In this document: positions 1 through 49,115 of the stretch, piece after piece
Numbering within the stretch: the first letter of the stretch is position 1
Layout of the letters: every line of letters starts with the position of its first letter
Assembly (NCBI GenBank): GCA_023334545.1
Contig: JAADVB010000116.1
Location: forward strand, 1 to 54,272
From: Salisapilia sapeloensis CBS 127946
Lineage: Eukaryota > Protista > Oomycota
Reading direction: 5' to 3'
Length of the DNA stretch: 54,272 nt
Made by a program: the position numbers and the translations under genes
Notes under the pieces: model-generated
Database searches by the model: none
Told to the model about the DNA's origin: nothing
What the model saw: only the letters and a program-made list of their open reading frames with translations

Positions 1-1459
1 ACCTCCATCCTGCCTCGACACGATGCCCTCCTAGACTAAAGTGAACGCCAACAAGCCTAATCCGAGCAATCGTTTCGTTGTTGACTAGCGTGTCAACTCC
101 GACGCAAGTACCTACTCTTTGTAGCGATAAAGGTACATCCCGTATAGAGATTTCCACTGGACATTTCTGAAGGAGCTGCTGGTTTCATTGAAGGTGAGTC
201 ACATGCGAAACTAATTCCGCCGTGGTCCGAAGAGAAATTAAAGTCGTCTGTGTCAAGGTCGGAAACACGAACGCTGACGAAATTGCTGTTGCTTGTTTTG
301 CGTAATACAATGCTAATGTGCTATCGCGCAAAATCCGTCGTATTGGGATTGTTTCTACATGCAATCGAGTGGTAGCATCGAGTGTTGTGCATTCGCCTTA
401 AAATGTCTTCTTGATTTGTGGTACGCAAGCGAGATCAGTCGATGATCCGAACATGAAGTTATTCATCTGGCGTTTGTTCGACCTCGCGAATGATAGAAAT
501 GTAGATTCGCAGCTTGTAGTGGCTGTCGAATAGTTGATAGCCACGGATTCTTTTAAGTTACTGCTATCTATTTTTGCCTTTCGTTGCAAGATGTAACTTG
601 GCAGCACTGAAGGCTTAATAAATTTCTGTCTTCAGCTCGTTTTTTCTTCTCGGAATGATGTGGAGTATCATGCTTCTATCTTCATAGCGCACACTTAGGC
701 ACTTCACGCATATACTGCGAGTGCATTCCTTTGGCGTGACAAGCTTGACTTCGTTTTCTTTTCAATCCGCTTCAGCAAGTTATATCTGTTCCTATCGATG
801 CATCCGGTTACCATCAAGTATCTTTACGTGGGAATCCATTGCATTCCTTCTTCCTTACAATTCGAAGGCTGCATCTAAAAGACTCATTCTTCCTCATTTT
901 TACGCTTAGCTCAAGTCAACTATGATTCGAGGATTAAAAATATAGATGGATCTCTGCTCCCTGTTTCTACATTGAGGTAGACTTGCAATCACTTTCTGCT
1001 TAGTGTTCTTTTCTTTAAATGGCAAAACCTTATGCAACCTGCGTATGAGCTTAAATATTCGAGGAGAAAAGGTTCTTCGAAAGATAAGCTCGAAAATTGA
1101 TAGCTACATCCGATGGCAGGTAAATGGCAATGCGACGCATTATAGGTAGATTTCTACAAGTGATCAAGCAATCTATTGGAGCACACACAACACTTATAGA
1201 GTGGAGCTGAGTACATGCTAGACACGAGGAACGTAGAAAATGATTGATTTGCACCCAGATCATGTCGGATACCATCTAGTGAACCTCGTTGACCGAGGTT
1301 ACAGTGTAGACTGGAAGACTAGATCTTGCCAATCAACTTTAGAGTTTATATTCTGTTTCTTTATTCTCATAAATCTTATAAGCGAGGAAGGTAGTAGGTG
1401 TGTAGGATGCATGCACTGGAAACATCGTGCTTGTAACTGGTTCATCGTGGACTTGTCGT

Positions 1460-3716: not shown

Positions 3717-4014
3717 GCTCGATGGCTGTTTGCTTTTGCTTAGTCTGGTTTGAAACACTCGAACATTCAAAACAACAACTTGTGTTATACTGATACATTT
3801 CCAGTTACTTGGATATTGGATGAAGTTGGTCATGGGGATAAAGGCATTAAGATGCACTATGAGCAGAGTATGTTAGGACTTTCTAATGATGAAGCAGTGC
3901 ACTAACAAGTATGCATAATTGATAATGAAAATAAGACCAAGTTCATTATGTCAGATTTTATTGACGTAGCCAACCTGCATTGGAATGAAATTTGCAAGAT
4001 GTAGTTAAGAAAAC

Positions 4015-5919: not shown

Positions 5920-8900
5920 ATGCGCTGGTGGATTGAAAAGACACTCATTGCAAGTGTGTTTCTACCACTGAGCTATGGAAATTCTAGTAAGATTATATAT
6001 TGTACTTGCTTTTAATTGTTGAAGTTACATGTTATCTAGTTCCAGGAGATCCGAGGAATGTACTGCTGTCTCCATTGACGCATGACAGCGTGAACATTAC
6101 GTGGGAGCCGCCACTTTCGACTGTACCTGTGACCTCCTACCTTGTTGAGTGGGATCCCATTCCACCCGTTCGGGCGGTGCAGACGGTCACGACATCTCAA
6201 AAGCTCTTCGGGAACGAAATCCAAGAGATACGGACGTACGCTCAGGATGTGAATGCTGTTCAACGTGTCCAGATCCTGTGCACGCCCATATCCGAGGTGC
6301 AGACGATTCGAACGCGTGCTGCGCCCGGCGAAGTGCTTGGAGGGTTGTTCACGATTGAGCTAGATACGACTGCGTTGGGCGGATCAAAGCAGCGGTCTGG
6401 TGTGATTAGTGCCTCTGCACTAGCCGACACGGCTGTGTACTCCGTAAAGGAAATCCTGAATGCGATGCCAAATATCGCTGGTGCCGTGCAGTCCGTCACG
6501 CGTTCACCAGCGGACTTGGAAGGAGGATACACATGGGAAGTCGAGTTCAAAGCTGAATTTGGCAACGTACCGGAGATGACCGTCGAAAGCAACTTTTTAA
6601 CCGGAAGTGGTGCTGACGTCATTATTGAGACACCCACACAAGGCGCATTTATCTCTCAAGGAGGGTTCACACTTGGTTTCCATGATGAATGGACAAAGGA
6701 GTTGAGTTTTGAAGCATCTTCTAAAGAGGTGGAAGAAGCACTTGAAGAATTAAGCAAAATTGCTCGAGTCGGGGTCGCTCGTGAGCCTGCTAGTCCGCAG
6801 AATGCGTTCTCTTGGTTGATCACATTTACCTCAGATGCTGAGTACAATCGAGGCGACGTTGCTCAACTAAGCATCCAAGAAAGCCAAACGTTTCTTGGCG
6901 GCGATGTCTCATTAAAGACAGAGCATGTTACGCGTGGGAACCACCTTTATGGCACGTTTCAGCTTAAATACAAGAACGTACCTACATTGGATATCCCATT
7001 TGACTGCTCGGCGGAGGTGATGCAAACGAGATTGGAGGAACTGAGCACAATTACATCCATTGCAGTCTCCCGAACGAGTGGTCCAGACACAGAGAAAGGA
7101 TATACGTGGCAAGTATCCTTTCTCGATAGTCTCGACAGTCTCGAGCTGTTAGAAATTGAGTCAATGGCGGAATTGCAAGAGACCAGAATTGATAGTGTTG
7201 TATCAAGAGGCATTTCAATCACAAAAGCGAGAGACGGAACACTACAGGAAGTCCAGCAGATCCAAGCTCGACCGTCGGATCCTGCCACCCAAGTGACTAC
7301 TTCGACCAACTATCGTATCATGACTAGCTTTGGCGGTGAAAACGCATTCACAGGTCCGATACCTGCCTTAATGCACAGCTCTGGTAGTTGTGCGTCAGAT
7401 ATGCCTGAGATTCAACAGATTGCTATCATGACAGTGGACGCAAAAGGTGTCGGACGAGATGACTTCGTCTCTCCTTTAGCCATGTACCAAATCGTTTTTG
7501 TATCGGCCAAAACAGGAATAGAAGAGACTACAACGCCATTGTATCTGAATAAGAATGACGGCGATTGTGATGCACTTGCGTCTGATATCAAAGCTAGTCT
7601 GGAAGCGTTGGATGGTGTTATTGGGACTGTCATCGTAGAGTCTACTGGCACGTCTTTCATTAAGTCGAATGAATGTACATGGACAATTACCTTCCCAAAC
7701 GAACCTGGCAATTTGGATGAACTGCGCGTGATTAATGCCTATGCGGAGCCTCCGGTTCCGGAGCAAGTATTGGTGATTGAAGATGACACAATCACCGTTT
7801 CAACGATCCAAGAAGGAAGGATCGAAGTCATCAAGACGGAGCTGGAAAAGCTGCCGAATGTCGGACCAGTTATTGTAACATATAAGCCAAAGACGGGGAA
7901 TAACGCAGACTATTCATGCACTTGGTTCGTCACCTTTGCCGGGAATACCGGGGACCTTCCATTGATGCAAGTCAGTCTAGATGTCGCGACGGTAGACCCT
8001 GCCGAGTATGATACATCGAAGCAGGCGAATGGAGATATCGTCGAGATCGTTGCTGACAAGGAAGGCACGTCAGAGGCATTGTATGGACACTTTGCATTGA
8101 GACTGTATGGTCAACGGACAGGATATGTTCCATTTGATGTGGATGCAATGCAGCTAAAGCGTGAAATTGAGATGACGTTGAACACCGGTAGCGTCTCCGT
8201 TGAACGCCAGCCATCTAATCTGCACGGAGGTTTTACATGGCGCATCGAATTTGAGAGTATCATGGGTGATGTCGAGTTGCTTCACGTGGACATTGGCAGT
8301 CTGGAAGGAACGTATCCATTGGCACAAGTGGAAAACGTTGTCCTAGGTCTGCCTCCTCCATACAACTCGAAAGATGCAGTGAACAAAGTTGCGTTCGGTC
8401 GCTCCGTGGTCACTGACTTTAGTGACTTGACTGTCATCGCTACTGATTTAGATGAAAACGTCCCGTTCTACGCTCAAGTGAGTGCGATGAATGACTTCGG
8501 ATCAAGTGCGTCTGTACCATCGACACCTCAATTCCTACCTCCGACACCTCAGACGCCTAGTGAACCCTCTCAGGTTGTCTTGTCCCACAATGACGGAGAT
8601 TCTATCCAAATATCTATTGTGAGCCCGCGAACCGATGGCGGACGTCCGCTAGATGCATACGAAGTGGAGCTATCTGACAATGGTCCGTTTGTTGATGAAG
8701 TGCAACATGTTCAGTTGTCTACTGGTGTCCAAAATGAAGAGCAAGAAGTCTCTGTGGTTACGGATGGTGTGAGTGAAGTCCAGATCATCCATCTCACATC
8801 TACATACAATGGTGCAGACCAAGTCGAAACTCAGCACGTGGATTGTGATGCTATGAATGACGACGGGTACTTTACTTTGACGTTTGTGGATGAGACAACA

Positions 8901-11900
8901 GCACGTATTAGCGCTTCGGAAACAGACGCGAACGAAATTAAGCGTGTATTGGAAGAACTAGATTCCATCACATCCGTATCTGTCGCGTTTGATGCTGGAC
9001 GAACGTTTGCGTGTGAGCAGTGTGAGCAAAGCGGTGGATGTCCTAGCTCCGGATTCTCCATCACGTACAACCAAGTAGAGGGATACAAAGGCGAGATGCC
9101 ACTGCTTACTCCGGATGTTTATAACCTGAATGGTAATCGACGGGTTCTGGTCACACAGTCGCAAATAGGAAGTGCGCCACCGGGAGGCGAGTTCCAACTA
9201 GAGTATAACAATGAGCTTACTGTACCTATTGCCTTCAACGCTAATGAGGAAGAGCTCCGTGCTGCTCTCCAGCCGCTCGAGCCTGTCTTTACCATTCAAA
9301 TAACAGAAAGCACAAACCTATTGGATGTGGCTGCACAAGATCAGCAACAAAAGCTGTGGCTTGTCACGTTTGATGGAAGTGGATATGTACCAGACTTAAC
9401 TGTACCTCAAAAAGGAAATAAGCTGACAGGCAACGGTGTCGACATTGCGTTCTACACAAAAGGAAACAAGTTTACGGATGCAATTGTATCTGTCGCTGGT
9501 AACTATGCGCGTGGAGAGTTCCAGCTAAGTCTTGGTGGCCACGTCACGGAACAAATTGCCATTGATGCGGCAGATGTCACTGTGAAAGACCGACTGGAAA
9601 AGCTTCCAAACGTCGGTGTTGTAGATGTTCGACGTTATGGTCCGACCAAGTTGAACGAGTACTCGTGGCTTGTGACTTTCGTTTCTAATCCTGGGAACTT
9701 TCCTGTCGGATCAGCGAACATGATGGAGCTGGAAGGAGTTTATAATAGTTTGGAACTGCTTGGTCAAAATAGTCGTGTTCAAGTGTCTACGTCACCGGAA
9801 GGATCGGAGTCTATTGACGGGTTCTTCACATTGAGCTACGGTAGCACGGGAGTCTATACGACTCCTATATCCGCATATGCAACTGCAGAGGGGGTGAAGA
9901 GGGCGCTGGAAGAGCTACCTAGCGTCGGTGGCGTATCGGTGAGTCGAAGGACCAACGTGGATGGCTTCTCATGGTTCGTTACGTTTGACAAGTGTCGAAA
10001 CGTTGATAATGCTGCCGTGTGCAATAACGGAGATGTACCGAACTTGACACCTGATAGCTCGCAACTACTTGGTGGAGACGTGGCAAATCCACCAACAATA
10101 ACTGTAACTAGCGTACAGGAAGGTAATGGCCCATCTAGTGGTCTCACCTACCTCTTCACGGACATGAAAAGTGCTGCACCTTATTTGGCATCTATCGAAA
10201 ACCTCATCTATGGTAAAAGGTACTATGCACGCTCATCGTTCCATTCGGAGATGGGGTACGGACCACGAACGATTTCGGTGCCTGCATACGTGACGACTAA
10301 TCATCTTCCTCCGGGTAAGATGAGACGCGTCGAACTCGTTTCTTCCTCGGCAACGTCTATTAAGGTAGAATGGGAGCCGCCGACATTAAATGGTGGCACG
10401 AGAATATCTGGATATCAACTCTTTATAGCTGATTGGGAAGGAGGAAATTATCGCAAAGTATATGATCGACCAAATGATGCAGCAACATTGTCTACAACAT
10501 TATTGATTGCCAAAGATAATGTGATTGAAAGTGGAAGGCAGTACTACTTTAAAGTACGTGCAGTGAACTTTTGCATGGCTGAGAATGAGGACGAAGGGTG
10601 CTATGGAGCGTTTAGTGACCCTGCGCAGTATCATGTGCGAGATCCAGTGCTTCCAGGCGCTCCGAGAGCACTCTATCGAGACTCTTCGACTACTATTAAT
10701 GATGTGAATGTTGTAAATGACGGCATCATTGTGGTCAATTGGGAACCACCACTGGACAATGGAGGAAGTGAAATTGTCGAGTATGAACTCTATATGGACG
10801 CAAACGATGGCAATGGCTTTATGAAACAGACTCTTTCTGGATCATTCCCTTATGGCTACACGCACTCTGTCAATGGCTTAACAGAAGGTAACACATACCG
10901 GTTCTACGTTCGAGCTGTTAATGCAGTGGGAGCATCCGGACATAGCTCTATCTTGTCTGTCGTCCTTGCAAACGTTCCGCCGCCAGTTCTCAGTGCTCAG
11001 CTTTTGGATGTAACGCCGACGTCGATGCACCTTCGATGGCAGCCACCTAGTCAATGTACATCTTCCTTGACAGCTTGTAATGGAAGCCCTGTGCTTGGTT
11101 ATAAACTGTGGCAGTTTGAAGGTGTGTCAGCGAGTTACTCGAACACGGGATATCCAGTCCATAGTGAAGTGCAACGCATTGAGACGTTCATCGGAACTCC
11201 TGGAAAAGAGGTGCAAGAAATTACGATTACAGATGCAACTGGTAAGCTCCGCATCTACTTGAATGGCGAGACGAGTCACTTGCTGGATGCAAAGGCAAGT
11301 ACCATGGAGATGAAAGCTGCTGTTGAAAGCACTGGGATTGGTGCAGTTGATGTAACGGATGGAGCTACAATGTCTGTGACAGGAAGAAGCTGGAGAGTTA
11401 CGTTTAGTGGATACACTGGTCCTTTAGAGCCGATGGTCATCGTACCTGAGACGCTTGCCAACTCTAATCCACTTGTAGCTTATACAGCTACTGTCGAGCG
11501 TGTTGAGAAAGGAAGTACCGTTCTTGCTGGTGACTTTACCGTCGCCTTTCGAGGATATGAAACTCCGTCTCTGAGCTATGATGTATCCGAGTTGGATATG
11601 AAGCGAGTACTGGAGAACTTGGAGTCTATAGGAATAGTAAGTGTAAAGAGAACCGACAAAACAGATAATGCCAGGTACTGGGATATCACGTTCATGACGG
11701 AGCTAGGTGATCTTCCGTCGATGGTTGTCACTGATGGTAGACTCACTGGAGGTGAAACCAGTGTAAAAGTGTCAACGGAGCGTGAAGGAACGTCTGGATC
11801 AATGATATACGACGGAACGACGTTTCCAGATACGCTCAAGTACACGGCGGAGGGTTTAATTCCTGATACGCTATATTCATTCGTGGTGATTGCAATTAAT

Positions 11901-14900
11901 GCTGCAGGAGATGGTCTCATGGGCATCCCTACGCCAGCGCTGGCTGCGTCTGCTGGTGCCTATAGTGCAAAAACGATTGCCTACGGTGCGTCTTTAACAC
12001 AAGGTCGTGCTGGTGTTGTCTACGAGGTGCAGAGTATCCAAACCAAGTCACTTGGTGGCGCAGACTCTTTTACACTTCAATACGGCGCAAATGAAAACGC
12101 ACTGGGTCCTTTCACAATAGCCTCGACGGTAGATGAGCTAGCAGCAGCTTTGAGAAACGAAGCTGGTGATGTTGTTGTCACAAAGGATGCGCTTATTAAC
12201 GAAGACGTTGTTTGGTTTGTGACTTTTGTCGCAATTCAAGGAGATGTAGACATGATCCGATGCAACTTGGATGCCAGCCAAGTGCTTATTGAAGAGTTTA
12301 TTCGTGGCGACGCGAATGAGTTTACCATTGCCCCGAGAAAAACTTCTGGTGATGTCGTTACGTACTCTAGTCTACCGCTCGAATTTCAAGGCAAAGATGT
12401 CTTTTACACAGAATTGTGGAGCTCTCCCGTGACGGTTGTGGATGGTACGCACGAGTGGGTTTCGGATGGTGGCAAAGCAGTGTTTAAGCCGGTTCGATAT
12501 GAAATTCAAAGGATTGAGATTGACTCGACAGCAGGATCGTTTAATGTGAAATTAGACACATCGAACGTGAGGATTGCTGGTATGGATAGCATCAGTACTG
12601 TCCATGTTGATGCTGCTCTACTTGGTCAGCCAGATACGAGTGACGAGTACGCGTCCAGTTTACTACAAGCAAGTATCGAGTCACTTGAGAATGTCGAATC
12701 GGTGCAAGTGTCTAGAACACAAGGAACAGGTGCTTCACTTCAGACAACTTGGACGTACTTGGTAACGTTCGTGAGTGACTTTTGCGATCTGCCAGAGCTT
12801 GTGCTGGACGGCGATGCTGCATTTATGAGCGAATTGACAACTGTATCTGGTCCGGAAATTACATTTACGGAAGTGCAAAAGGGAAATTGCGATGTGCAGA
12901 CGGTAATGTCATCCGCTAGTGTCGAAGCTGAGTCGCATATCATCGGCATTTCCACTTGGCTGGACGCTAGTTCAGGAACGACATCACTCTCTGGAGACTT
13001 CGAACTTGATGTGGAGGGAACTGGCGTGACGGTTACTGTTGGAGCCACTGCAGCTGATGTAAAAGCACTGCTTGAAGACGCTTTGGATGAAGAGAGTGTA
13101 CAAGTGAGTATGGAATATGCCAATTACGATGGTTCTTCCAACCTCCAGACTTGGCTAGTTACCTTTACGACTATTCTCGAGAGTGCACCAGACATTACGC
13201 TTAAAGCCAACCGACTCGTTGGAAATAATGCACAAGTCCAGATTGAAGAGGTAGAGCGAATGGATGTACCGTTTGCAGGCACATTTGTCCTTAATTTCTT
13301 AGGCGAGACGACACTTGACTTGCCATTTGATATTGAAACGTTGGAGCTGAAGACCGAGTTGGAAAAGTTGCATCAGATAAAGCAAGTGGATGTGAAGAAA
13401 GAGGAGCTTTATAATGGGAACCGATGGATTATATCCTTCACTCAGAACCTCGGTGATCTTCCGCTTTTGAAGGCGCTTCCGTATCGATATGAAGTACAAG
13501 AGGTGGAGACGATAGGAGGAACACCGACGCCTCTTGATGGACACTTTACACTGAAATTCAGAGACGAAGAGAGTGGCTCGATTGCATACGACGCTACAAG
13601 TGAACAGATGAAAGGAGTGATTGAAAGCATGTCTAGTATCGGACTGGTGGATGTGACTAGAAGTGACAAGCTCGACTATGGCAATCGGTACCAATGGCAA
13701 ATTACCTTCCGGTCGATACTGGGAGAAATTGATCTACTTGAAGCGGATGGTTCTCTACTGGAAGGAACACTGCCGTCTGTCCAGGTTACTCAGCTAGTGA
13801 GCGGTAGTGTGGAAGCTCTCACGGGAAGCTTTGTCGAGCTGGATGTGTTCAAGATGAATCCTGGTCTACCGAGCTACAGAGCTCAGTACATCCCAGAAGT
13901 TGCCAATATGGAAGAAGGGTATGCGCTTGCTGTCCAGCAGCTGAGAAAAGGAGGACTACGTGCCTTGTACTATGACAATTACTGGTTCCAGGACTCCCCG
14001 GTTCTGAACAAGATTGATCCGCAGATTAATATGAATTGGGGCACGAATGCCATTACAGAGTACGGACGTGACTATGTCAGTGTTCGATGGATGGGCAAAG
14101 TGACAGTGCCGTATGACGATGACTACGTTATCTACATTCGCTCTGTCGATGAAGTAAAAGTTTGGTTTGATCATGATCTGAAAGTAGATACTTTCAAGAC
14201 AATACCATCTACAGATGTCGGTACAAGTGCCAACTTCCACGTGCGTTTAAGTAAAGATGTTTACTACGATCTGAAGATTGAGTATCGAGAGGAAAGTGGT
14301 CCAGCGGATATGTACTTGTACTGGAGTTCATCTTACTTACCCTACCAGCTCATTCCTTCGGTGCATTTGTGGTACGGTGAGCATATTATGGACAGTCCAT
14401 TTGCAGTGCAAGTTACTCCTGGCAGCATGGATTTCCCTTATACTACAGCATACGGGGATGGACTCATTAAAGGCACGGCTGGTATTTTGTCTACATTTAT
14501 TATCCAGGCAAAGGATCAAGCTAATAACAATAAGATCGCCGGTGGAGACTTGTTTGAAGTAATCTTAACACACAAGCTCAAAGGCAACCTTCGATTGACC
14601 CCATTTGAAGAGATCGAGTATCTTGGTGACGGCCAGTACTTGGTTAAGTACCTGCCAAGTGTCAGTGGACAGTACTCGCTTTCGATCAAGACGCTCGATA
14701 ATATGGACATCTACTGTGGACTCGGTGTTGCGAACAAGTGCAGTCCGTTTACAGTGTCTGTCTCGCCTGGTCCAGTGACATCCCACACGAGTCAAGCTTA
14801 CGGTTCTTATGCAACCGGCAAGTCGAATAACGGTTTGAGAGAAGTAATAGCTGGGCAACTCGCCACTTTTGCGATTCAAGCACGAGATACGTTTGAGAAT

Positions 14901-17900
14901 AAGCATCCAGCAACGCAAGAGATTGTCACATTTGAGACAGAACTGACGTTGCAGTCGAATCCTACGATCGTGTATCGAAGCAGTGTTCAGTACACTACCG
15001 AGTCTAGTGCTGAAACGGGTGTCTATTATGTCGACTACAGTGTTCCTATTGCAGGGATGTATTCTGTTCAGACGTACCTGAACAATTCTCCAATTTTGAT
15101 GTGTCCTGAGGGTTTGGATACTTGTCATCCGCTTGGCACTCCGGCTGTACTACGTGTCATTCACGCGACACTACACGGTCCGAGCAGTACCGTCGCCAAT
15201 GGTGCAAACAACTTCGCATTATCGGAAGCCACAAGTGGTGTGCAGACGTACTTTAACGTGTACGCTCGAGATGCCTTTAGCAATCGTCGGTACGGTGATC
15301 TTAGCAGTATGGATATCACGTATAAGGATAAGAACTACGATCGAGGCTATACAGACGCCTTTGCCGTTCGCTTGGAAGGAGGGAAAGAAGTCTTTGAAAC
15401 TTCTTCTGCTATACAGACGCTTCGACTTGATGATAACAAGAACTCGGGTGTCTTTCGACTCAGCTACGGCAAATTCGTCCGGACGATTTGTCAATCTTGT
15501 GTCAAAGAAATCACTATTGATAGCATCATTACGGATGAAGATGTCATCGGCGTCTTGTCACCTAATACGAAGTTCTCCATTGGAAGTTGTATCTTTACAG
15601 CGACAAATGTTGATACATCGATCATTACAGTAAAAAGCGACCATGGATGTAGTACAGAAGCAGCCCTTGCGCTTGGCATAAAGACAGCTGATGATACAAG
15701 TCCAATGACAGCTTTGCTACATTCAATGGTGACTGATATCGGTATGCAATACGCTTTACAGGACCTCCACCCCTCCTCAAAAGTAAAGGTAACAAGGACA
15801 ACGTTTGATAGCGCCAGCGGAAAGGGCTATGAGTGGAAGATAACGTTCGTGTCCGAATTGGAAAAGTGGAGTCGAGCACCGTTGGTCGTAGAGTATCCAA
15901 AGGACCACGTGGATTCGTTGTTTGGTACGCCGCTAGAGGTTGCATTTGATGCAGCAGGTGGATTCTATCCAGTATACTACATGCTTCACTACGCTGGAGC
16001 ATACTCGATGAGTGTCACGACTGCGGATCGCAACACACATGTGCAAGGTTCGCCTTTCATGGTGCATGTGGAGGATCACATGACAAATGGGGAAAGTGCC
16101 ATTGCTGCATACGGGAATGATCAAGTCGAAGGGTTTGATCAATCTGTTCAGAATGTGACGGCAGGTGAAGATCTGACTTTTAGCGTCCAGCTGAAGGATG
16201 CACGACGGATTGAACGTCAAGTCATTCGCATAAAGGCAATTGTACTGGAGGACACGGAGGCAGTGCAAGAGATCACTGCTTCTGCTTCGTTTGTGCTCCG
16301 TTTTAGAGGTAGTCCGGATACGGCAAGCTTGAACGTTGGCGATCCGTTTACAAAAGTCAAGACAGAACTTGAAAACCTAGGCACAATATCGACTGGTGGT
16401 ATCTCGGTAAGCCCTGCCGAAGGGTCTGTACAGACGAGTATTGCTTCAGGCCAGCCATTTTACATCACGTTTACAGAAGAACGAGGTGATCTACCAGAGC
16501 TAGGTATAACATCAGCCTCTGCCACTATTCGTACGGAAGTGAGAGGAGTGACGAGTATTCGGCACGAAGTACAGGCTTTCAAGTGCACCTCCTCTGCTGA
16601 TATTGCTACTGTTGGTGACCTAAGCATCCAGTATGGATCCAACTCAATTGCAGTCGCTGCAGACACCGCACTTACATCATTGGAAGGCTCTCTTAGTACA
16701 CTGTTAGACTCCATGGTTGCTGTCACGAGTGAAGATGGAGCTCAAACCAGTGTCTGTGCAGTCGGACCACCAAGTCGTATATTCATCAAGTTCCTAAAGC
16801 CACGGGGTGATGTCCCTAATATCGTCTTTAACGTCCCAGCCAATCCATCGCTGACGGTTGTGAGCGAAGAACATGTAAAGGGTGTGTATCCAGTCTACGG
16901 GTCTTTCTCGCTACGCTACAAGGACGAGAAGACTAGTGCTCTACCGTTCGACGTCTCTTCAGTAGAAGTTGCTACAGCGCTGGAGCAGTTGTCAGCTTTT
17001 AATGATGTAAGTGTTGAAGGCGACTGGTTTGACTTGTCGACTGAAAGTGGATCAACTGGAGGAGAGACCGTTGCGCAGTGGACCATTGATTTCACGTCTT
17101 CTAGTGGCGATGTCGCGTCACTTGAAGTCGATGAAGCCAATCTTCTGTGGCCTGATGATGGACAACTACCGCCGTACGTGGAAGTGATTGAAGAAGTTAA
17201 AGGAGCTTTTGGAAACAATCGTTCTGTTACAGATGTGAATGAAGCTGGCATTTATGTCTCTTTATCGACCACGTATGAAGATCCTGGCATGCAGGAGGTT
17301 CAAGTGTTTGCTTGTCGTGGTGAATCGAGCTTCACATTATCTTTTGACACAAGTGGAAACTCTGTTGTTATGTCACCTCTGTATGATCTACTCGAGTTTG
17401 AAGCAAAGCTGCAGGAGATTATCACCGACGGCGTATCGGTGTATAATCATAGAACGAAGGAAGCGGCACAAGATGCTTCCTTTACGACTGTCTGTTCTAT
17501 CGATAATCCTCTACCTATTGAAATTCGCTTTGAAAACGCACTCGATGTGCCTTTGATCGAATGGACAGGTGAAGGGGATGATATTACAATTGTAGAGAAG
17601 ACGAAAGGCAGACCAAAGAGCAGTCGAGTGGTCAAGGTTGAAAATACAGAAGTTCAGCAAGTCGAATGCCAAGTGGATACCAATACGCCAATACCGATCG
17701 AATTTAACTTCGCTGGACATGCATTTGTAGTATCGTCCCAGGCGACTGTTGCTGCTTTTGGGTCGACTTTAAATGCCTTGGAGCCGATTCAAGATGCTGG
17801 CGGTGTGACAGTGACTAGTAACCAAGGGAAAGTATGCTACAATCCGGATGATGGAGGAGCTTTAGAGCTCATTTCAATCGCTTTTAACGACATTGGTGAT

Positions 17901-26900: not shown

Positions 26901-29900
26901 CAGTCAGCTGAACAAGTTTTTATCAAGGTGAGTGAAAAGGTAAAAGGAGATGCTGGACTGGGTGCAGGATCTAATGAGAATAAGCAAGTGATACACTCCG
27001 AGACTGTAAAACCTCGATATAGTGTCCAGGAAGTATCAATCTACAGTGCTTCGCCTGTAGATATAAGAGGAACAATTCGACTGCAGTACGCAGGAGAATC
27101 TACTGGTGATATCGATGTCATTTCAACTGCAGACGTTGTGAAAAAGAAGCTGGAAAACTTGTATTCTATCGATACGGTGATGGTGACATCAACTCCTGTC
27201 AGTGGAGATAAATTCCTTCCAGTACAAAGGTATGGTGTCAAATGGAGTATCACAATTGCACCAGCAGATAGCATCTTTGCCAGTCCTAGTATGCTATTGA
27301 CCACGCAAAGTTCAGTAACGAAAGCTTGGAGACAAATGTCTTGTGGTGGAACCTTACTTGGAACATCACCATGTGCACAAGTATCCAGTGTAGAAGAGTC
27401 TGGACAAGTGTACAATGCGCTCATAGACTTAAACGACGTTGGATCCGATTTGAGCTCCGTGTCGTACACTGCGACAGTCTCCGCTATCAACTCCCGAAGC
27501 GACTTTAAGAGCAAAACAGTGTCGAGTAAAAAACCAGTGTACATTAGGAATCGAGCTCCTTCTGCTGTGGTGGATTTGGTGGCCAGTCCACTTGATGAAA
27601 GCACCATTGGTGTCAAGTGGAAACCGTCCCTTTCTTCAGGAGGTGATGCTATCCAGAACTACAGAGTCCAGTGGGATGTGAGTGAAAGCTTTACTGGTGT
27701 GAGCGCCTATTCTGGTGCTGATATTATTCAAACTATCGGAACACAAGTGTTCAATTACGAGATAAAGAGACTCGATAGTTCGTACGAGTATTACGTGCGA
27801 GTCATACCTTATAACGCACAAGGGTATGGAAACCCAGCGCTTGCCCAAGTGATCTTTAGTAACCAGCGAGTGGTTCGTATGATGCTGAAGAAGGATAATG
27901 GTGTCGACTTTGGAGCGCTTGATAGTGCTCTGCAGTACTTTAGACTTCACTTTACAAACTATAATACGCTCGAGACAGAGTTGATTCCAGTAAATGCTGA
28001 TGCCGCAGCGGTGGAAGAGGAGCTAAACAAGCTGGATGCTGTCGGCATGGTTTCCGTTACGAGGGACGATCATTCTAAAGGTGACGCCAATCTGTATGAC
28101 AGCATGTCGACTTCAGACTTTTTCCTAGACTGGCGTATCACGTTCATTCAAAGCTCTGTGGAAGGGATACGTCCGAATGATCTCGGTGACCTTGTCGTTA
28201 CACTGGACACGCAAGTAGCTACACCATTCGCCCAAGGGGACTTTACTGTCCAACCTATTAGTGACGAAGTAGAAGGCACAAGATCCGTTACTCCTCAAGC
28301 GATGCCAATTGCCATTTCGAAGGACCAAATACAGGTATCTGTCGTTGACGACACTTCGATCGGTGTCTACTGGACACTCGACCCGGCTCAAGTATCAAAG
28401 GTTCGGATAGAATGGAGCGATGTGCCGTATTTTGATCGATCAAGTTATTCGGACGAGAACATGTATGCAACGGTGACGGGTCTTGCAGCTATAGTTCCAA
28501 CAGCTGACGAAAAGTACTTGATCACAGGCCTATCCACTGGACTTTTGTACTACGTTCGCATTTCTGCTTTCAACGGTGACCTGGTCAATTCGCCTGACAA
28601 ACATCAAGGCTACAGTGATCCGATACTTGCTCAAGTTGTGGATGCTCACGGGAATAAAATTTCGTCACTCACTATCGCTCCGGCAGTCCAAATTCCATAT
28701 AAGCCGACAAGTGCTCGCATGAAAGTTAGCTCACTGGACATTCACGACCAGATTGAGCTCTTGTTCACCAGTCCTTCGCTCAACTATCTAGGCTTTCAAG
28801 CCGGTGATGGTGGTGACGCTATTACCAAGTATAGGGTGATGGTGGATACTAATACAGACTTTTCAAGTAGCAATAGGTTTAATGTGGACTTTAGCACGGG
28901 GGATGTTGATGGTAACCCACTGGCTTGTGTTAATGAAGAGTGCTCTTTCCCAATAGGCGCGACTGTGCAGAGTCTAAGCATTATGAAGGGAGCGACTGGA
29001 GAGTTTAAGCTGCAGAAAGGAGGGGAATTCACAAAGCGTATATGTCAGGACTGCAACATAGATCTAGTGCGTTCGTCCAATGGACTCGTGACGACTTTAA
29101 CTGCAGCAGATTTGACATGGGCAAATGATATGGGTACGCATGAGATGATCTCGTTGCGAAACGTCGATGGGCTCGCGTGCATGTTTCAAAAGTCGTCTAC
29201 GCAGTCTGCAAACCCGAACGAGCTCACTGTCACTTCTCACAATGGTGCAGCTTGTGGTCTAGTGGATACAGGTGGAGCGTTCGACGTTTACACACGAGAC
29301 ACTTCCAGTGCTTGCATCGGCAGTGCCGTGGCTTCTAGTGATCTAGCGACTGCACTTTTGAATTTATATGGAGACAAAGTGACTGTGAACCAGGAGGTGG
29401 ACTCGTCTACTTCGATGGCAAAGACATTCATGGTTACTTTTACCGGAGCAAGTGTATCGGGAAGACAAGATCCCATGCACGTTGTGGCTGCAGACGGAAC
29501 GGCTACGTGTACGAAGATGACTGGAAACGTGTGGGTAGAGTCAGAGATCCCTGGTGGGTTCTTGATGTCTGGTCAAAAGTACGCGATTCAAATTGCTGCA
29601 ATCAACTCTGCTGGCATCGGAGACTTTCTCCCAGCTAGAGCAGACTGTCATAATGGTCCATGTACAGAGGACTTCCGACTGGCTGCTCAAGCTCCTCCAG
29701 AAGCTCCTGAAACCGCGATCGTGCTCAACAAAATGGCTGACCATGAACAGTTGGAAGTTCAGTGGACACCACCTCTCGGCACGAATGGAGGTGCAGTTGT
29801 GAACTACCTTGTCGAGTACTCTACTGATTCATTCGGGCGAGTCTCGTTGTGTACGTCTTGTGCGACACAATTAGTTGGTCAAGAGCTTACGATCGATGTC

Positions 29901-32900
29901 GTGCCTGCCATTACGATCCCTGATGGTCACTTGATTGCTATTAGTAGTCTCCAACCCGAATGTCTGCTTATTAAAAAAGCAGATAAAAGCTCTAGTGGAA
30001 CGAAGAGAGTGTATGAAGTTGAAGCCAACCACGGCTGTGATGACTTTGCCGAACAGCTCGTTAATATTGAAGGTTTGCATAGCTCCAACGGTGGCTTTGT
30101 CCACGTCCAGCCAACGACTGCGCTTGTAGTAGATAGCAATGTCTATCAAACTGCGTTAACAAGTCTAGTTGCTGGTACTGCGTACGAGATCCGCGTTCGA
30201 GCACAGAATACGGAAGGCATTAGTGCTTTCACACCAGCTATTCCTACCTGTCCCAACTCTGTTTCGGATTGCACGGACGCTGTGTTGGGAGGTAACGCTC
30301 TGGCGATCGTGACGAGAGAAATCCCGAGTGTGCCAGTGGTCGAGCTTCCGTCTCTCCTTCGCACAGGTTCCTTTACGAACGAGTTGAAATTCAGTGAAAG
30401 TACGATCGAAATGGCACTGTCGGATCCGCACGAATGGGCTGGGTACGAACAAATTGATAGGTATAAAGTCGAGTGGGATGCTCTTCCAGACTTTTCATCG
30501 TCCAAGCAAAGTGCTTTGGTGGACTTGACTGGTCTCGAGCCTTCGCTGTTTACTACTAGAGAGTTGTGTAGTACATGTGTAGATGCACTCGCAGGAACGC
30601 TGCTGACGCTCTCATCTGATGTTGATGCGTTGCAGCCAGAAGAGTACGTTACCATTGACATGGGTACGACGAACTGTCTGCTGCATATAGAAAGTAAAAC
30701 TAGTCCATCCTCTTATAATGTCTACGCCGGTCACACCTGTGGCACGATCGCTTCTCCGGCAGCTTTATCCATGCATAAGCGCATCAAGTACATTTACGAG
30801 ATTACTGGACTAACTATGGGCGTACCAGTGTATGTACGTGCTGCAGCGCATAACTCACTCGGGTATGGTCCCTTTTCGGATCCGGTGAAAGTGAAGCCAC
30901 AACGACAGTCTGATCCACCCTACAACGTCCAAGTGCGTAAGCTGACACCGGAGCAAGATCCGAACATTGAGCGCGCAACTCGTATTTCTTCCGTGATGGT
31001 GACGTTTGCGTACCCGATGATTGATTTGATAACGGACTTTTATGGTGCTGGAGGGGACGATATTGAAGAGTTTTTGATCGAATGGGCAGATGCTGCGTGG
31101 AGTCAGCCGAAGAAAGAGGTGCAGACGATCGCCATTACTTCAAGCGGCAGTAATATAGTGTCAGGAGAGTTTACGTTGATGCTCGACACGACCATTGGAG
31201 CATGCCCTTTATGTCTAGAACATAGTCGAAGTGTCACAAATGCTATTTCACATAACGCAGATGCACCAGAGCTAGTGAAAGCGTTGCGAGCGCTCCCGAA
31301 TATCGGTCAGGTGGATGTGCGACGAGATCCAGCGGCTTGCACGGCATTCGACGAATGTACTTGGAAAGTGACGTTTATCTCCGAGATAGGGGACATTCCG
31401 ATGCTTGTTGTCGATAGCCATCGGCTGTATGATGCTGCTGGTGGTACGGTCGACGTCACGATAACTTCTGACAACGGTGATACGAACGGATTAAAGCTAT
31501 GTCCAACGAAGGACGCTGGTATTCTAAACGAAGGGATGGAGCACTGTGGTCGCGTGAGCTCTTCCGCAGACTCTAGCTACTCGTATTTGATCACTGGACT
31601 GGATCCTGGTGCGACGTATTACGTGCGTATGGCAGCGTATAGTACGATGGGATACAGCACTCAGCGTGTATCGGCTCCTGAATTTATAACCGTCCCGTAT
31701 GAAACTCCGAGTGCCGTTGTCTCTCCATTCAATGCCGATGGTAGACCGCTCTTGAAACTCTCTGGTCCGACTTCTTTAGTTGTAGTCTTCAACGCTCCTG
31801 TCTTTACCGGTGGTAGTGAAATCACGTCATATACGATCGAGTGGGATCGATCGGAAGACTTTACGAGCGGACCGAATGGTGACGCCATGGGAGCTCACTA
31901 TCTCGTGAATGACGCGTCAATTCGAAAGTACAGTACGAACGAAATGTTCTACAAGATTGAAGGACTGGCCACGAATCAAGTCTACTACGTTCGTGTGTTT
32001 GCTATTAACGAAGAGAAGGGTGCTGGACATCCAGTGCTGACGATGCCGACGCATGAGAAACCTCGTTCGAAACCGGAGATGCCGGCTTTACTAGAGACGT
32101 CGAATGCCGTACCAGAGGGTAGAAGCATGCAGGTGGCATGGACTCCGCCGGAGAATGATGCAAGGTCTGACAGCGCCATCGTAGCGTATCATGTACATGT
32201 GCTTGAGAAGAGTCTAACGGCACCATTCTTTGGTACACCAACGATCCAGACGCTAGAGACGAAGAACACGGTGGACGATGGATTCTTCACCTTGATGTTC
32301 GAAGGAGACACGAACTTTGTCACGGCACCGTATCGGAAACTTCCGGGTACCATCACTGTCTTGCAGGGAAGCTCGATTGTACGTACGAGTGAAGACTTGA
32401 CTGGATTGCTGGAAGTAGGAGATGTTGTCTTAATTGCAGGAGCCAAGTACCTCGTTGGTGCAACCGGGACTTTCTCTGCTACGCAGTTCCCACTCGCAGA
32501 TACTGCAGATATAAATGCCTTGTCTGGAGCAACGTTTGCGTCGACGCCTACGACGTATACTGGAACGACAATAGAGGACGAAGAACTGTACGCGCTGTGG
32601 AAAACGACTCCACTCGAGTATAACATCACTCCGAAGGACATGAAAGAGGCATTAGAGATGCTGCCTAGCGTAGGTATCGTCAACATCGAGCGTACGTCCA
32701 TAGCTGGAAATACGTACACGTGGGATATCACGTTCCTATCGACACTTCCTCGACCGAACAACCTGCTGGTGGTGAATGGACGGTATCTAACTGGTACGAG
32801 TGCTGGTGCCAGTGTGACGTTGACGGAACCAGGCAAAAATCCGACAAACTTGCACACGTTGACTGTGCCTACGAGTGAATTGAATGGAGAGCTACAGACG

Positions 32901-35900
32901 GTTATCGATGGTCTTGACACTGGCGTCGAGTACTTTGTTCAAGTCGCGGCTGAAAATGATCTTGGCGTCGGAGCGTTTAAGAGTAATATGGAAACGATAG
33001 GCTTCATCCCGACTAAGACACCTGACGCCATTGCAGACTTGCGTGTAATCGTACGATCAGCAACGTCTATAGGTGTAAAGTATGATCAGTTAGAGCGTTC
33101 TGGTGGTCTGCCAGTGGACAAGTATCGCCTCACGATTGACTCGATGTCTACATTCGAAAACACCAATACAAACTTGGTGCTAGATGATATTGCGAGAAGT
33201 CAAAAGTACTATCGAGTCACGACGGCTGCGCACACTGGTCCATTCACGCCTGAAAGTAAATTTATGCTATCAACCGTCCAATTACGTCCAGAAGTGTTGC
33301 TGCGGAACCCGCAACGGATTGATGCAAAGCTATCGGCATACGTGCAGCTGACTGAATTCGAAACCACAGGTTTCTTGATGAGGAGCAAACCGGAACTTGA
33401 TCGAGGTATCGGAGATGCGAGTCTAGTTGCGGAGGTAGGTCGAGGCCAAGTGCTTCGAGTCCGTAATGAACTCTTCACGGCATGTCTGGATTCGAATGTA
33501 AAGTACACTTTACCGAGTGTTAAAGTATCTGCTGTGAATGGCGATCGGTCAGAATTGACATTAGCTACTGCGTTATCTACGGCATGGATGGATGTGATAG
33601 TTTCTGGTACGATCCTTTCGCTTGGTGTTTCGGACTGGGCATGCCGTCTACAGGTGAATGTCGACATGGCACAGGCAGATGCTATCCAAGTGTCGCCACA
33701 TGATTGTCCGCAAGAGTTCTTTGATGAGAAGATGCCACTGGATGTAAATGTCCATATTGGACCTGCATTGCTGCCTGTATGCAATTACGATGATGCTTGG
33801 ACTCGAGTCTCACTGGAGAAACGTACAAGTATAATAGAGAAATTCAGGAATGAGAATCTGGACAATCCGATTGCGATTTTCAAGTCGACGCAGTCGCTAG
33901 GAATGATGAGTCAACTCGTGACGAATGAACAAGTCGGTCGCGTATCTCCTATGCCTCTTACGTTGGATGCAGAAGTAGCGCTTGAGTGTGGAGAGTACTT
34001 TCATCTCGGGTCTTTCTTTTCATCAAAACTCTTCCGGGTTGTAAACAAGTGCGATAGCACCAACACTTGCGGCTGTGATGTGGGTTTGATGGCTTCTACG
34101 ATTGAGATTGGCGATGTGCATAACGTTGCGACGGCCTTATCACAGTCAGATCTTGCTTTTAGTACGAAGGAAGTGCAGAAAGTAACGATTAAAGCGGCAG
34201 ACCCGATGGACTTTGGCGTCGGAGGCTTCCGTCTAAAGTTCGGAGGTGAAATCACTTCGACCACGAAAAGAGGTGGCGACGGTGGTGTCGACTTGAATGA
34301 CGATGTCGGGTGTCTTGTATGGGCTTCTGGTATAACTGACGATGACGCGGAAGCAGACCTTTTGGATATCAAAGACGAACTCTTGCGATTCGACACCATT
34401 GATAACGTACGCGTATCTCGAGAGATTACGCAAGATCGAAAGCAAGTGAATTATATTGTCGAGTTCCTCGGTATGGGAGGTAGAGGTAGATTACCAGAGC
34501 TGTCTGTGGTCAATGTCGGGAGTCAAGGATGCAGTGCATTCAGTGCTGCGGTCACGACGCATCAGGTGACGAGAGAACAAACGAGTCAAGTCAGCGTGTA
34601 CCGTTTACCTACCACTAGTCCCATTTCATTTGAAGCAACAGAAGCTGATGTGCAGCATGCTTTGGAAGCATTGGTGGATGTGGCTAAAGTCGACGTTGAT
34701 CGACAGACTCGAGACCATGGATATGACTGGGAGATCACGTTTAATTCGTATTCAGACAACGACGACTACTTGCCAGACGCAATCGTAGGAAATGGAGAGA
34801 TGCTGGTGGCAGTCTATGATCCAAAAGTGGTGGTGACTCCATTCAATCGACTACAAGTCGACCTAAGACCATATCCAGCTCTCATCGCATCCACTTCGAT
34901 CTTTGTCAAGCTGCAGGCACACAACTCAAACGGATTCGGTGCTGACTCGTTGCCGAATCCAGTGTCAACGCAGCTGAGTGACCAACCGCCTCTCGTCGTA
35001 CGAGATGCACTAGTGGAAATCCTGTCTGACACACAAGTCGCTGTTGAGTGGAGTGGTCCGAATAGCTATTTGAATGCAGATACTTTAAACTCGCTTTTAG
35101 AAATAACCGAGTACCGGCTCGAGTGGTGGCCAACGGGCGAAGAGAATAAGAAGAAGTACACGATTTTCCACGCGAGAGAGTCGGATCCGGTGCGGCAGGA
35201 TGTGCAATTGGTCAGTGTGAGTGCGCCAAAATTCTCTTCGAACGATGGGAAGACGTACGAGAAGACTTACACGATGGCAGGGACGTATCAGATCGGATAC
35301 GACAGTTGCTGGAGTCGAGAGCTGAGCTATGGTTGTACCGAGTTAGAGATGAAGGAAGCGTTGGAAGACCTTCCGACCATTCATCAAGTGCATGTAGATC
35401 GAGAGTTGGCTGCGAATGGGTACTCGTACATCATTCGTTTCGACCAGGCTTTCGGAAAGGACAGTGGGACTTCGAAGATGTTTTATAATTCTGATCTAGC
35501 TCCACCAGCACTCAACAAGCTGGAGACGAGGAACACGAACTTGCTCTTGTGTGACTCTACACCAGGCACGTCATGCTTCCCACACGTTCCGGATAGTGTG
35601 GGCCCAAGTGTCAGTCGTTCCGTCATGACAGAGGTACAGTCCCTACGCTGCAAAGGTGCTCCTGTATCGTCTGTCGGCTTCTTCCTCGAGCTAAACGGTC
35701 AAAAGACGAATAAAATTGCATCGGACGGTACGCTAATAGACTTGAAGGATGCTATCGAAGCAATGCCGGACGTTGGTGTCGTCAGCGTCACCTTTGCCAG
35801 TAACCCAGCCGCTACGACATCCTTGTGTGACGCTACGTCTCCCCCGTTCGTCCGGATTGACTTTATGACATTGCAAGGAGATGTACCACTCATGGTCGTT

Positions 35901-37181
35901 TCTGCAGATTCAGATGCTGGCGTAAGTGTCGTGACGAGAGAAGTTGAGAAGGGTAAGAACCAGCGTGAAAAGGGTCGGAAACCGTACTCGTTTGTCGTCC
36001 ATGGATTGGCACCTACAAAAACTTATGCACTCCGTATCGCTGGTGCAAATAGGATCGGATACGGATACTTTTCCGATATTCTTCAAATTAAGACGTACTT
36101 GCAGCCACCAAGTCCCCCTGCTTCCATCCAAGTCGCCGAGAACTTGGATGCACAACGGCTCCTTGTCACGTTTGAAGAACCTCCATTCGATGGTGGAAAT
36201 GACATTACAGGTTACCATATTGAATGGGACTTGATGCCGTCGCTTACGAGTACTTGTGGGGAAGCGATGGAAGTTGCAAGCATTCGCTTTGCAAGCGAAA
36301 ATGCGCTAGATGCTGTTCCGACGTTTGGTTTCACTCTTACGAGCCGATTTGCTTTCAGCGGCGACACGCCAAGTAATAGTAGATGCATCTCGTGGAAATC
36401 GACTGCTGCGCAAGTAGAGACGCTGGTGAAGGAACACGCCGGAGAGTTTTCGGCGTTAGAACACGTTCGGGTGACAAAGTATGGAGACGATAGTGCCAAA
36501 TGGGACTATGGACATACCTATCGTATCACGTTTGTGAATGAAGATGAAGACCCATTCTTCCAAGTGCCTGAGATAGAGTTTTATGCCGGATGCTCATTTG
36601 CGAATACCAAGTCTATTGCCTTCGAGCAAATGCACCCGGACTTGGATGTAATCACAGCAACGGGGGTGGTCAATACGGTGAAGAAAGCTTGTGATGCCAA
36701 CTTACTACGCAGTCGGTTGTACCACACCATTTCGGAAAACCAGGCACTGACGACTGCACTCTCGGCACCAGCACTGTCGCTCGGGTTGGAGTATATTGGA
36801 GCACACGCAGATATACTGTGTGAGTCGTGTGTGCAAACACTTGACGCGAGCAACAAGCTGACATTGGCATCGCCAATCAGCACGTCTCCACTGCCAAATC
36901 CGTATGTAATTCTAGAGGATCCTCTTCATGGTGCTTTCTGCGTTATGGAGCTGGTCGGATACAGCGATGGTGATACGACAGTCACAGTTGATCTTATGGA
37001 AGCAGAAGGGGTACATGGCGTTGCATGCTCTCTCGAGCTGCCTTTCGAAAAGCAAGCATATCGGATGAAGCAGTTCAATTTGCGAGCGTATTGGATCGCC
37101 AACTTGGTGTCTGGGAAACAGTACACTATATCCGTTCGTGCTGAGAACAGTGTAGGTCGAGGAGATGCCATCATTGTTTAA
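5920..37181 (+). CDS. Giant secreted multidomain protein, about 10,402 aa: FN3 (~22), filamin/Ig (~9), PA14 (3), unnamed repeat module (~40). Exons 5920-5986 and 6040-37181
   Basis: A 31-kb stop-free ORF. The ORF-track start at 6000 is a TTG. An upstream ATG at 5920 encodes the signal-like MRWWIEKTLIASVFLPLSYGNS and splices in frame (GTAAGA at 5987, TAG ending 6039) to the first FN3 (PGDPRNV..VNITWEPP..YLVEWD). FN3, filamin (AYGxGL..AG..F.IQA.D..N) and PA14 (GGL...YY.N..F..D.QINF.WG..YVSVRW.G) motifs recur along the ORF. The 5' exon is less certain than the ORF itself. Confidence 0.9.
5987..6039 (+). other. Predicted 53-nt phase-1 intron of the giant gene (alternative in-frame acceptor at 6045)
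   Basis: GTAAGA donor, T-rich interior with TTTTAAT, TAG acceptor. It restores the frame between ATG 5920 and the long ORF, and its size matches the two L21 introns. Confidence 0.7.
13950..14375 (+). other. PA14 domain 1 in the giant protein
   Basis: GGLRALYYDNYWF..KIDPQINMNWG..YVSVRWMGKV..SVDEVKVWFD..YYDLKIEYREESG..LYWSS. Confidence 0.8.
18399..18835 (+). other. PA14 domain 2 in the giant protein
   Basis: GGLAGYYY..RHDLSVDFSWG..YYSVMWTGEI..GSDEGAMLMLDG..YYAIQIKYR..VQLQWGS. Confidence 0.8.
22464..22900 (+). other. PA14 domain 3 in the giant protein
   Basis: GGLLASYYTNRWLF..RVDKEINFEW..YVSVRWQGYI..VNDGGRVWIG..ITVEYREEVG..LFWES. Confidence 0.8.
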
Positions 37182-48974: not shown

Positions 48975-49115
48975 GACAGTCGAAAACAATTGATTCTGGT
49001 TGCCAGTCTCCCGTGGCCTTCGGACGACCTCCTCGTCTATGGTTGATCGAAGGTTTCTCCAAGTGACTTAAGTGTGGAAAAAGCGAAACCACTGGTCCAT
49101 CGCCGCACAATCGAG

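Follow-up and report, generated by a model that had tools for sequence, protein, structure and literature searches.

In the oomycete Salisapilia sapeloensis CBS 127946, we found a gene for a giant protein of more than 10,000 amino acids (aa) whose most abundant domain is a small module that very probably shares ancestry with domains decorating the virions of actinobacteriophages. The gene lies on contig JAADVB010000116.1 of assembly GCA_023334545.1, of which we analyzed positions 1 to 54,272 of the forward strand (54,272 nucleotides (nt), hereafter the window); positions not given in aa refer to this window. The explanation that best accounts for the data as a whole, to which we assign a probability of roughly 0.7, is that anciently diverged modules of the C-terminal-extension-like (CTE-like) type form the main brick of a giant secreted oomycete protein. 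We are highly confident that the module is a homolog of the CTE-like decoration domains on virions of mycobacteriophage Bxb1, considering homology and architecture jointly. The fold itself is already known from phage structures deposited in 2023-2024. What appears to be new is the module as the dominant, and by prediction nested, brick of giant stramenopile proteins, together with the breadth of a family that has no Pfam or NCBIfam model; we found no description of these in the literature searched.

For the identification of the module copies, a profile hidden Markov model (HMM) was seeded with one copy and iterated on the giant protein alone, converging at 85 match positions. At an independent E-value (i-E) of at most 1e-3, this HMM found 41 copies of 85-110 aa in the giant protein, one of them split (a 42nd, weak match is the second piece of this copy, which is interrupted by about 60 aa), and the copies range from aa 99 to 10189, or nt 6294-36566. 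No matches at this threshold were found in 20 shuffled proteins or in the reversed protein. An earlier note on this DNA, made by eye from the letters, had counted roughly 40-45 copies between positions 6156 and 36620 and called the module the most abundant domain of the protein; the HMM bears out both statements, with all four anchor strings quoted there present, and with module envelopes making up 35% of the protein. The consensus proposed there likewise agrees with that of the HMM, E-V-Q..I...G.F.L...G..T..I.(F/Y)(D/N)A...(L/V)K.ALE.L..IG.V.V.R......W.(V/I)TF....GD.P.L.V. The copies align as one family, and the alignment of 39 of them has zero invariant columns and a single nearly invariant one, a buried-looking Val. 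The note had been unable to give the module a family name, and neither could we: when the 39 copies were scanned singly against Pfam at E <= 10, no family was shared among them, each family matching at most one copy with a best E-value of 0.0023, and NCBIfam gave no match for any copy. PHROGs returned weak matches only, to phrog_2839 (tail sheath) and phrog_10909 (major tail protein), and no precomputed Pfam domain was recorded over the repeats of bacterial homologs.

A second profile (A1), built from the 39 window copies only, was searched against all sequences of the Protein Data Bank (PDB). It matched "Tail tip cage, gp23" of Bxb1 (9D93) with an E-value of 9.5e-35, over three tandem stretches with i-E values of 2e-7 to 6e-10, as well as the Bxb1 major capsid protein (E 7e-4) and the Bxb1 tail tube protein (E 3e-3). 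The gp23 units are termed CTE-like domains in a later paper (PMC13252515). An AlphaFold2 (AF2) model of module 28, built with A1, reached a predicted local distance difference test (pLDDT) score of 89, with the order strand-strand-helix-strand-strand-strand. When this model was compared with 48,161 PDB representatives using VIA, the best match was again Bxb1 gp23 (residues 387-504, Z 9.9, 2.3 Å over 85 aa), followed by a protein of phage Patience (Z 8.9) and the Bxb1 capsid protein (Z 8.5), with the next match at 5.5; Foldseek on the same model agreed, with a probability of 1.00 and a TM-score of 0.67. Using tblastn, two adjacent window modules matched the minor tail protein of phage Timshel (28% identity over 158 aa, E 8e-6), and sheath proteins of Gordonia phages were matched as well, including the tail sheath of phage Pupper (39% over 67 aa). 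The window HMM found three copies in Timshel gp27 (i-E 1e-12 to 1e-14) and one in the insert of the Pupper sheath (3e-15), and the ordered motif EVQ, G.F.L, T..I..(N/D)A, AL..L, IG..V.V aligns by column across window, phage and planctomycete copies. Those predicted viral structures of BFVD that matched the module fold, such as that of the minor capsid protein of Patience (G1JWD3), are all from tailed phages. These results effectively refute the idea that the module is an unrelated eukaryotic invention that came to look phage-like by converging on a common small alpha/beta arrangement. While it is true that ferredoxin-like and other small alpha/beta folds reach Z-scores of 4-5, and that pairwise identity to the phage copies is only 23-39%, the E-value of 9.5e-35 was obtained by sequence alone with a profile made from window copies only, the HMM reached i-E values of 1e-12 to 1e-15 on phage proteins outside its training set, the elements of the motif keep their order, and a clear gap separates the three phage matches from all others in Z.

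The family reaches far beyond the phages. Searching A1 against 1.84 billion sequences, we obtained 14,393 cluster representatives (50% identity) at E <= 1e-3, of which 1,208 were found at E <= 1e-30; the largest arrays among the top matches have up to 54 matched stretches. A colinear ortholog of the giant protein in Phytophthora nicotianae is 46% identical over 1,688 aa, and colinear orthologs in Phytophthora and Globisporangium show 41-46% identity. Related multi-copy proteins are present in Pythium oligandrum, Pythium insidiosum, Albugo laibachii, Aphanomyces astaci, A. euteiches and A. cochlioides; ochrophyte carriers are Tribonema minus and Phaeothamnion, to which one MMETSP transcript and diatom clusters in the ESM Atlas can be added. 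Among the approximately 45 named proteins of the 14,393 clusters, no eukaryotic carrier beyond the stramenopiles was seen. A cysteine-free subset of the top matches consists of proteins from metagenome-assembled genomes (MAGs) of Planctomycetota, the richest of which packs 25 matched stretches into 2,251 aa. Bacterial genomes were scanned with a planctomycete consensus peptide (GTFTLTFxG; one genome per prokaryotic species, at least 120 loci), and loci were considered validated when matched by the window HMM at i-E <= 1e-5. This was the case for at least 66 bacterial loci (66 of 120 among the matches listed) in at least eight phyla; among these matches, Actinomycetota account for 32, Planctomycetota for 18, Pseudomonadota for 5, Myxococcota for 1, and Acidobacteriota, Verrucomicrobiota, Armatimonadota and Chloroflexota for two each. 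Validated carriers include the cultured strains Blastopirellula marina DSM 3645, Microbispora rosea ATCC 12950 and Solirubrobacter soli DSM 22325. Large secreted ThuA-GSDH-PKD-CBM6 proteins of Actinacidiphila, Microbispora and Solirubrobacter harbor one copy each, which identifies these actinobacterial carriers as cellular genes. The module apparently lies in or just behind the glucose/sorbosone-dehydrogenase (GSDH) propeller of such proteins (L063:2073-6554, L048:815-5188, L134:1181-5578, L073:4308-8000). One planctomycete protein (P0038) used as a query had no relative among the genome contigs searched. The earlier note had linked the module's pattern to actinobacteriophage tail proteins and to large bacterial surface proteins, and both links proved well founded, the first in Bxb1 gp23, Timshel and the Gordonia sheaths, the second in the Planctomycetota giants and the validated bacterial loci.

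In the window, the module is carried by a nuclear gene of the oomycete, which contains an intron, encodes a signal peptide and has orthologs in other oomycetes; its product is not a virion protein. Positions 6000-37181 of the forward strand form one stop-free frame of 10,393 aa, as read from the sequence, in which the first in-frame ATG occurs only at residue 156. A 67-nt exon (5920-5986, +) supplies an ATG and a signal-peptide-like leader, MRWWIEKTLIASVFLPLSYGNS, and is brought into frame with the giant open reading frame (ORF) by a 53-nt GT..AG intron (5987-6039, +; GTAAG...CTAG); the second exon (6040-37181, +) codes for approximately 10,380 aa and ends with a stop right behind a complete FN3 domain. 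The oomycete orthologs have comparable N-terminal signal peptides ahead of the same FN3 start, and no transmembrane-like hydrophobic segment was found across the giant protein. In addition, N-X-S/T sequons are depleted about 8-fold, with 9 observed and 71 ± 7 found in shuffled sequences; control motifs show no such deficit. The depletion recurs in the majority of the eukaryotic homologs examined (Aphanomyces, 3 versus 50 expected; Pythium oligandrum, 3 versus 36; the MMETSP homolog, 4 versus 59), whereas it is absent from Pythium insidiosum (23 versus 18 expected) and from planctomycete proteins (30 versus 27 and 88 versus 82). The depletion fits passage through a eukaryotic secretory pathway under selection against N-glycosylation, and it independently separates eukaryotic from bacterial carriers. 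Considering that the module is common in bacteria, and that this is a very long ORF in which a single intron was seen, one might suspect bacterial or phage contamination inside a eukaryotic assembly. The chance of this is negligible: the gene is flanked by an actin-family gene (2295-3857, -) and a gene with TPR and poly(A)-polymerase-like regions (45393-48989, -), the GT-AG intron links the signal-peptide exon to the giant exon, the sequon depletion is common to most of the eukaryotic homologs checked and not to the bacterial ones, colinear orthologs are present in oomycete genome assemblies, and the module recurs at no fewer than seven other loci of the same 22.4-Mb assembly, among them open frames of 8,764, 7,444 and 3,708 aa. 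These further loci are on contigs C545 (approximately 77.5-82.4 kb), C645 (approximately 14-34.7 kb), C456 (approximately 106.4-110.9 kb), C911, C158, C450 and C1089; on contig C456, three PA14 domains are in addition encoded by another, separate frame of 1,753 aa.

The array of modules is old. Compared in pairs, the window copies share at most 44% identity (median 23%), Tandem Repeats Finder reported one trivial 21-nt array only, and no direct DNA repeats of at least 40 nt were found. Copies are most similar to the copy of the same ordinal position in 7 of 10 cases in P. nicotianae and in 11 of 17 cases in another oomycete protein. This same-position pairing of most of the copies tested argues for an old array, and the related multi-copy proteins throughout the oomycetes and in ochrophytes make it at least as old as the oomycete radiation. 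The module would have been multiplied before the oomycetes radiated, after entering an early stramenopile from bacteria or their phages, a scenario suggested by distribution only. We consider this direction of transfer, from prokaryotes to stramenopiles, slightly better than even. The earlier note had suggested that the module is prokaryote- or phage-derived and was amplified in a stramenopile. The first half is favored by the distribution, with at least eight bacterial phyla and phages on one side and one eukaryotic supergroup among the named carriers on the other, but gains nothing from an unrooted module tree (160 copies, 84 columns) in which 5 of 157 branches are supported; the second, taken as a lineage-specific burst, dates the amplification too late. 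A module that is ancestrally stramenopile and was passed to bacteria and phages, or that is so old that no transfer is needed, seems unlikely to us, although it would agree with the largest arrays among the top matches, most of which contain cysteine, are depleted in sequons and look eukaryotic, and with the intermixing of labels on the tree, where eukaryote and prokaryote labels change 10 times (42 times when shuffled) and are clustered but intermixed. Set against it are the confinement of all named eukaryotic carriers to stramenopiles, the validated bacterial carriers in at least eight phyla together with many tailed phages, the presence of the bacterial module in ordinary secreted enzymes next to PKD and CBM6, and the fact that phage and planctomycete copies reach 55-58% identity, compared with 28-39% between window and phage copies (direct tblastn matches).

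With respect to function, the product of the gene would exceed 10,400 aa, be secreted and lack a membrane anchor, with the module as its main building block beside FN3, filamin/Ig-like and three PA14 (lectin-type) domains. Pfam scans of the whole protein returned fn3, PA14, Filamin and Ig_GEX2_N only, with fn3 matches reaching a summed E-value of 1.8e-83; the PA14 domains are at 13950-14336, 18399-18800 and 22464-22868, all on the forward strand. We infer, at about even odds, that the protein is an extracellular scaffold or adhesin, in which the modules could provide stable, protease-resistant bulk and serve as spacers or contact surfaces, perhaps binding glycans weakly in the way proposed for surface domains of phages, while the PA14 domains would supply sugar binding. 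One may also regard the modules primarily as lectin-like binding units, so that the protein would be a multivalent glycan adhesin and not a chain of inert spacers. The phage homologs are indeed exposed on capsid, tail tube and tail tip, cell-wall glycans are the reported ligands of baseplate accessory proteins from Bxb1 and Douge (PMC13252515), and the module occurs beside CBM6 and PKD in bacteria and beside PA14 here. We nevertheless find this reading doubtful, since the lack of any invariant column in the 39 copies, and the single nearly invariant, buried-looking Val, point to a structural core, and no binding by the CTE fold itself was shown in the literature found. A structural role is thus better supported than a shared binding site, given that no surface column is conserved among the copies; the contexts in which the module occurs elsewhere, on phage surfaces and together with CBM6 and PKD, leave room for weak glycan binding. 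The FG loop of the last FN3 contains an RGD (37158-37166, aa 10387-10389), placed as in fibronectin FN3-10, which was considered as a candidate motif and rejected, being absent from an ortholog (P0048); the giant protein has six RGDs where, by rough estimate, about two would be expected from composition.

The modules and FN3 domains appear to be arranged in an unusual manner. In the sequence, the first strands of an FN3 are followed by EVQ strands and modules, and the last strands of the FN3 appear much later. An AF2 model of aa 15-850, built with 20 oomycete orthologs, reached a pLDDT of 85.6, and VIA superposed the PDB FN3 chain 4n68_A on it with Z 13.3 (2.0 Å, 95 of 99 residues, model range 1..836). 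In other words, one FN3 is closed across the insert in this model: its N-terminal part (strands A, B, C and C'; 6042-6200, +) and its C-terminal part (aa ~799-850; 8394-8549, +) are predicted to meet around an insert of approximately 730 aa that holds six modules. The insert contains three EVQ strands after the apparent FN3 strand C', with E and Q invariant or nearly so in the orthologs, all predicted as beta strands with a pLDDT of 87-93; two of these (aa 73-80 and 87-94; 6216-6281, +) are "orphans" that precede the first complete module. When an EVQ strand is counted as an opening bracket and a module body as a closing one, the brackets balance out between the two parts of the FN3, in two groups nested three deep. 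One module is moreover split into halves that flank a complete module, as seen from the ortholog consensus and a half-module HMM: its putative N-half (EVQ strand and next strand, "YRIMTSF"; 7248-7364, +) is completed at 7785-7973, around module 4. Runs of conserved orphan EVQ strands that no module body follows directly occur at 6171-6317 and also at aa 391, 417, 900, 1723, 2291, 3766 and 3884. The last FN3 (aa ~10054-10393) displays the same split at the sequence level, around module 41. Modules are thus predicted to be inserted in FN3 loops, and sometimes in each other, so that the chain makes long out-and-back excursions and does not form plain beads on a string. In the fullest version of our account, an early stramenopile acquired a fold known only from actinobacteriophage virion decoration and turned it into the main brick of giant secreted proteins, with FN3 domains and modules nested several levels deep and with outward orphan EVQ strands zipping onto modules of the return path. 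We offer it tentatively, at somewhat less than even odds; we found no description of such a nested way of building long extracellular structures in the literature searched.

Several points weigh against our overall explanation or parts of it. The module tree cannot show the direction of transfer, and the direction rests on a small and biased sample of approximately 45 named clusters of 14,393. The nesting rests on one AF2 model read without coordinates. The idea that the orphan EVQ strands complete bodies that lack a strand is disfavored, as the first-strand position is already occupied, in the AF2 model, in the bodies that follow the first module; the orphan strands may instead be extra edge strands. 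Finally, our literature search found no expression, localization or binding data for the giant protein or its orthologs and nothing relevant on giant FN3/PA14 proteins of oomycetes, and the function of the phage CTE domains was not established in the literature found.

All module copies are on the forward strand, and their coordinates, each followed by the i-E value of the window HMM, are given here in order. The region up to the first PA14 domain holds module 1 (6294-6584; 9e-17), module 2 (6618-6875; 8e-22), module 3 (6912-7157; 3e-21), module 4, the one inserted within the split module (7407-7730; 9e-16), module 5, a C-half only, covering HMM positions 38-85 (7785-7973; 7e-14), module 6 (8040-8288; 4e-23), module 7 (8775-9110; 4e-16), module 8 (9141-9404; 3e-18), module 9 (9474-9707; 2e-20), module 10 (9774-10049; 1e-19), module 11 (11208-11441; 2e-17), module 12 (11484-11729; 5e-24), module 13 (12024-12263; 2e-14), module 14 (12501-12806; 3e-14), module 15 (12930-13202; 4e-16), module 16 (13233-13475; 2e-22) and module 17 (13491-13745; 1e-25). 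Between the first two PA14 domains are module 18 (15615-15881; 3e-16), module 19 (16212-16508; 1e-15), module 20 (16566-16829; 2e-12) and module 21 (16860-17129; 2e-19). Further on, module 22 (19731-20003; 5e-18), module 23 (20409-20678; 7e-16) and module 24 (20796-21044; 9e-19) precede module 25 (21432-21905), the copy split by the insert of about 60 aa into pieces at 21432-21686 and 21801-21905 (1e-14 and 7e-3), and module 26 (21972-22214; 1e-17). The third PA14 domain is followed by module 27 (23100-23333; 2e-14), module 28, the copy used for the AF2 model (24201-24449; 6e-26), module 29 (25524-25766; 1e-20), module 30 (25917-26156; 2e-11), module 31 (26607-26876; 2e-15), module 32 (27021-27260; 9e-17), module 33 (27915-28199; 4e-14), module 34 (29217-29483; 1e-13) and module 35 (31116-31412; 1e-23). 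Module 36 (32583-32771; 1e-16) is a C-part, with a candidate N-part approximately 110 aa upstream (32244-32312), and the array ends with module 37 (34170-34508; 3e-14), module 38 (34542-34775; 4e-18), module 39 (35199-35465; 2e-18), module 40 (35631-35900; 2e-18) and module 41 (36270-36566; 4e-11), which is flanked in the sequence by the halves of the last FN3. The stretch between modules 21 and 22 (17130-19730; aa 3711-4577, 867 aa) gave Filamin and PA14 matches only; EVQ-type strands occur in it at aa 3766 and 3884, with Cys-containing segments behind them, and it may harbor diverged variants of the module that the HMM missed.

The family described here, with more than 14,000 sequence clusters in phages, at least eight bacterial phyla and stramenopiles, has no Pfam or NCBIfam model, and the window copies together with PDB 9D93 are a ready seed and structure for one, which would re-annotate thousands of proteins now called "hypothetical", "titin-like" or "twitchin". 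Through it, surface domains that are exposed, and reportedly immunodominant, on therapeutic mycobacteriophages are connected with surface proteins of cells, which may help reveal the role of these domains. Important pathogens of crops and fish belong to the oomycetes, and the conserved PA14 protein of more than 10,000 aa, being secreted, is an unstudied candidate for a wall, cyst-coat or adhesion component, and the predicted closure of an FN3 around approximately 730 residues would be an extreme case of domain nesting.

Among known systems, titin and twitchin resemble the giant protein in size and in their numerous FN3 domains, and public records indeed name two oomycete orthologs (P0001 and P0028) "Twitchin" and "similar to titin isoform N2B". 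This identity was rejected, as Pfam found no kinase and no I-set Ig match anywhere in the 10,393 aa, and the names therefore look like a carry-over from FN3 matches; the oomycete protein is, by all indications, secreted and not sarcomeric, and has the CTE-like module as its main domain. The Ig-like decoration domains of tailed phages, such as those on the major capsid and tail tube proteins of Douge (PMC13033339), are likewise exposed, dispensable-looking add-ons that are thought to touch host glycans weakly, but have an all-beta Ig fold, whereas the module is alpha/beta. The giants of Planctomycetota (MAGs of Gemmataceae and Planctomycetaceae, and B. marina DSM 3645) share many tandem modules, giant size and a likely extracellular location. 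They differ in being cysteine-free and without sequon depletion, in having more short-form units, and in their far more uniform copies (consensus GTFTLTF.G.TT...ATAA.(I/V)Q.AL), and nesting with FN3 or PA14 was not seen in them.

The closest parallels are on phage virions. The C-terminal extension of the Bxb1 major capsid protein (9D9W/9D9X), the tail tube protein gp19 and the Patience protein (8GIU chain 1) are or carry surface-exposed accessory domains; the capsid and Patience domains have the same fold as the module, and the sequence matches of the capsid protein and gp19 are weak but significant. Unlike the modules of the giant protein, these are single terminal copies on an icosahedral shell or a tail tube and not part of a long multi-domain chain. 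Bxb1 gp23 (9D93 chain M; Freeman et al., Cell 2025, as cited in PMC13252515) shares with the giant protein both the fold and its tandem repetition, with an EVQ strand, a GxFxL strand, T..I.(Y/F)(N/D)A, an A..(V/L)..AL..L helix and an IG..V.V strand in the same order. The first two repeats of Timshel gp27 and, judging by the A1 alignment to the PDB sequence, those of gp23 are of a short form of approximately 60 aa that ends after the V.V strand, whereas nearly all window copies have an extra W.VTF...GD.P.L.V hairpin. Finally, gp23 carries three copies on a virion protein, compared with 41 in the oomycete protein, a cellular and apparently secreted protein in which the modules are predicted to be nested in FN3 loops.

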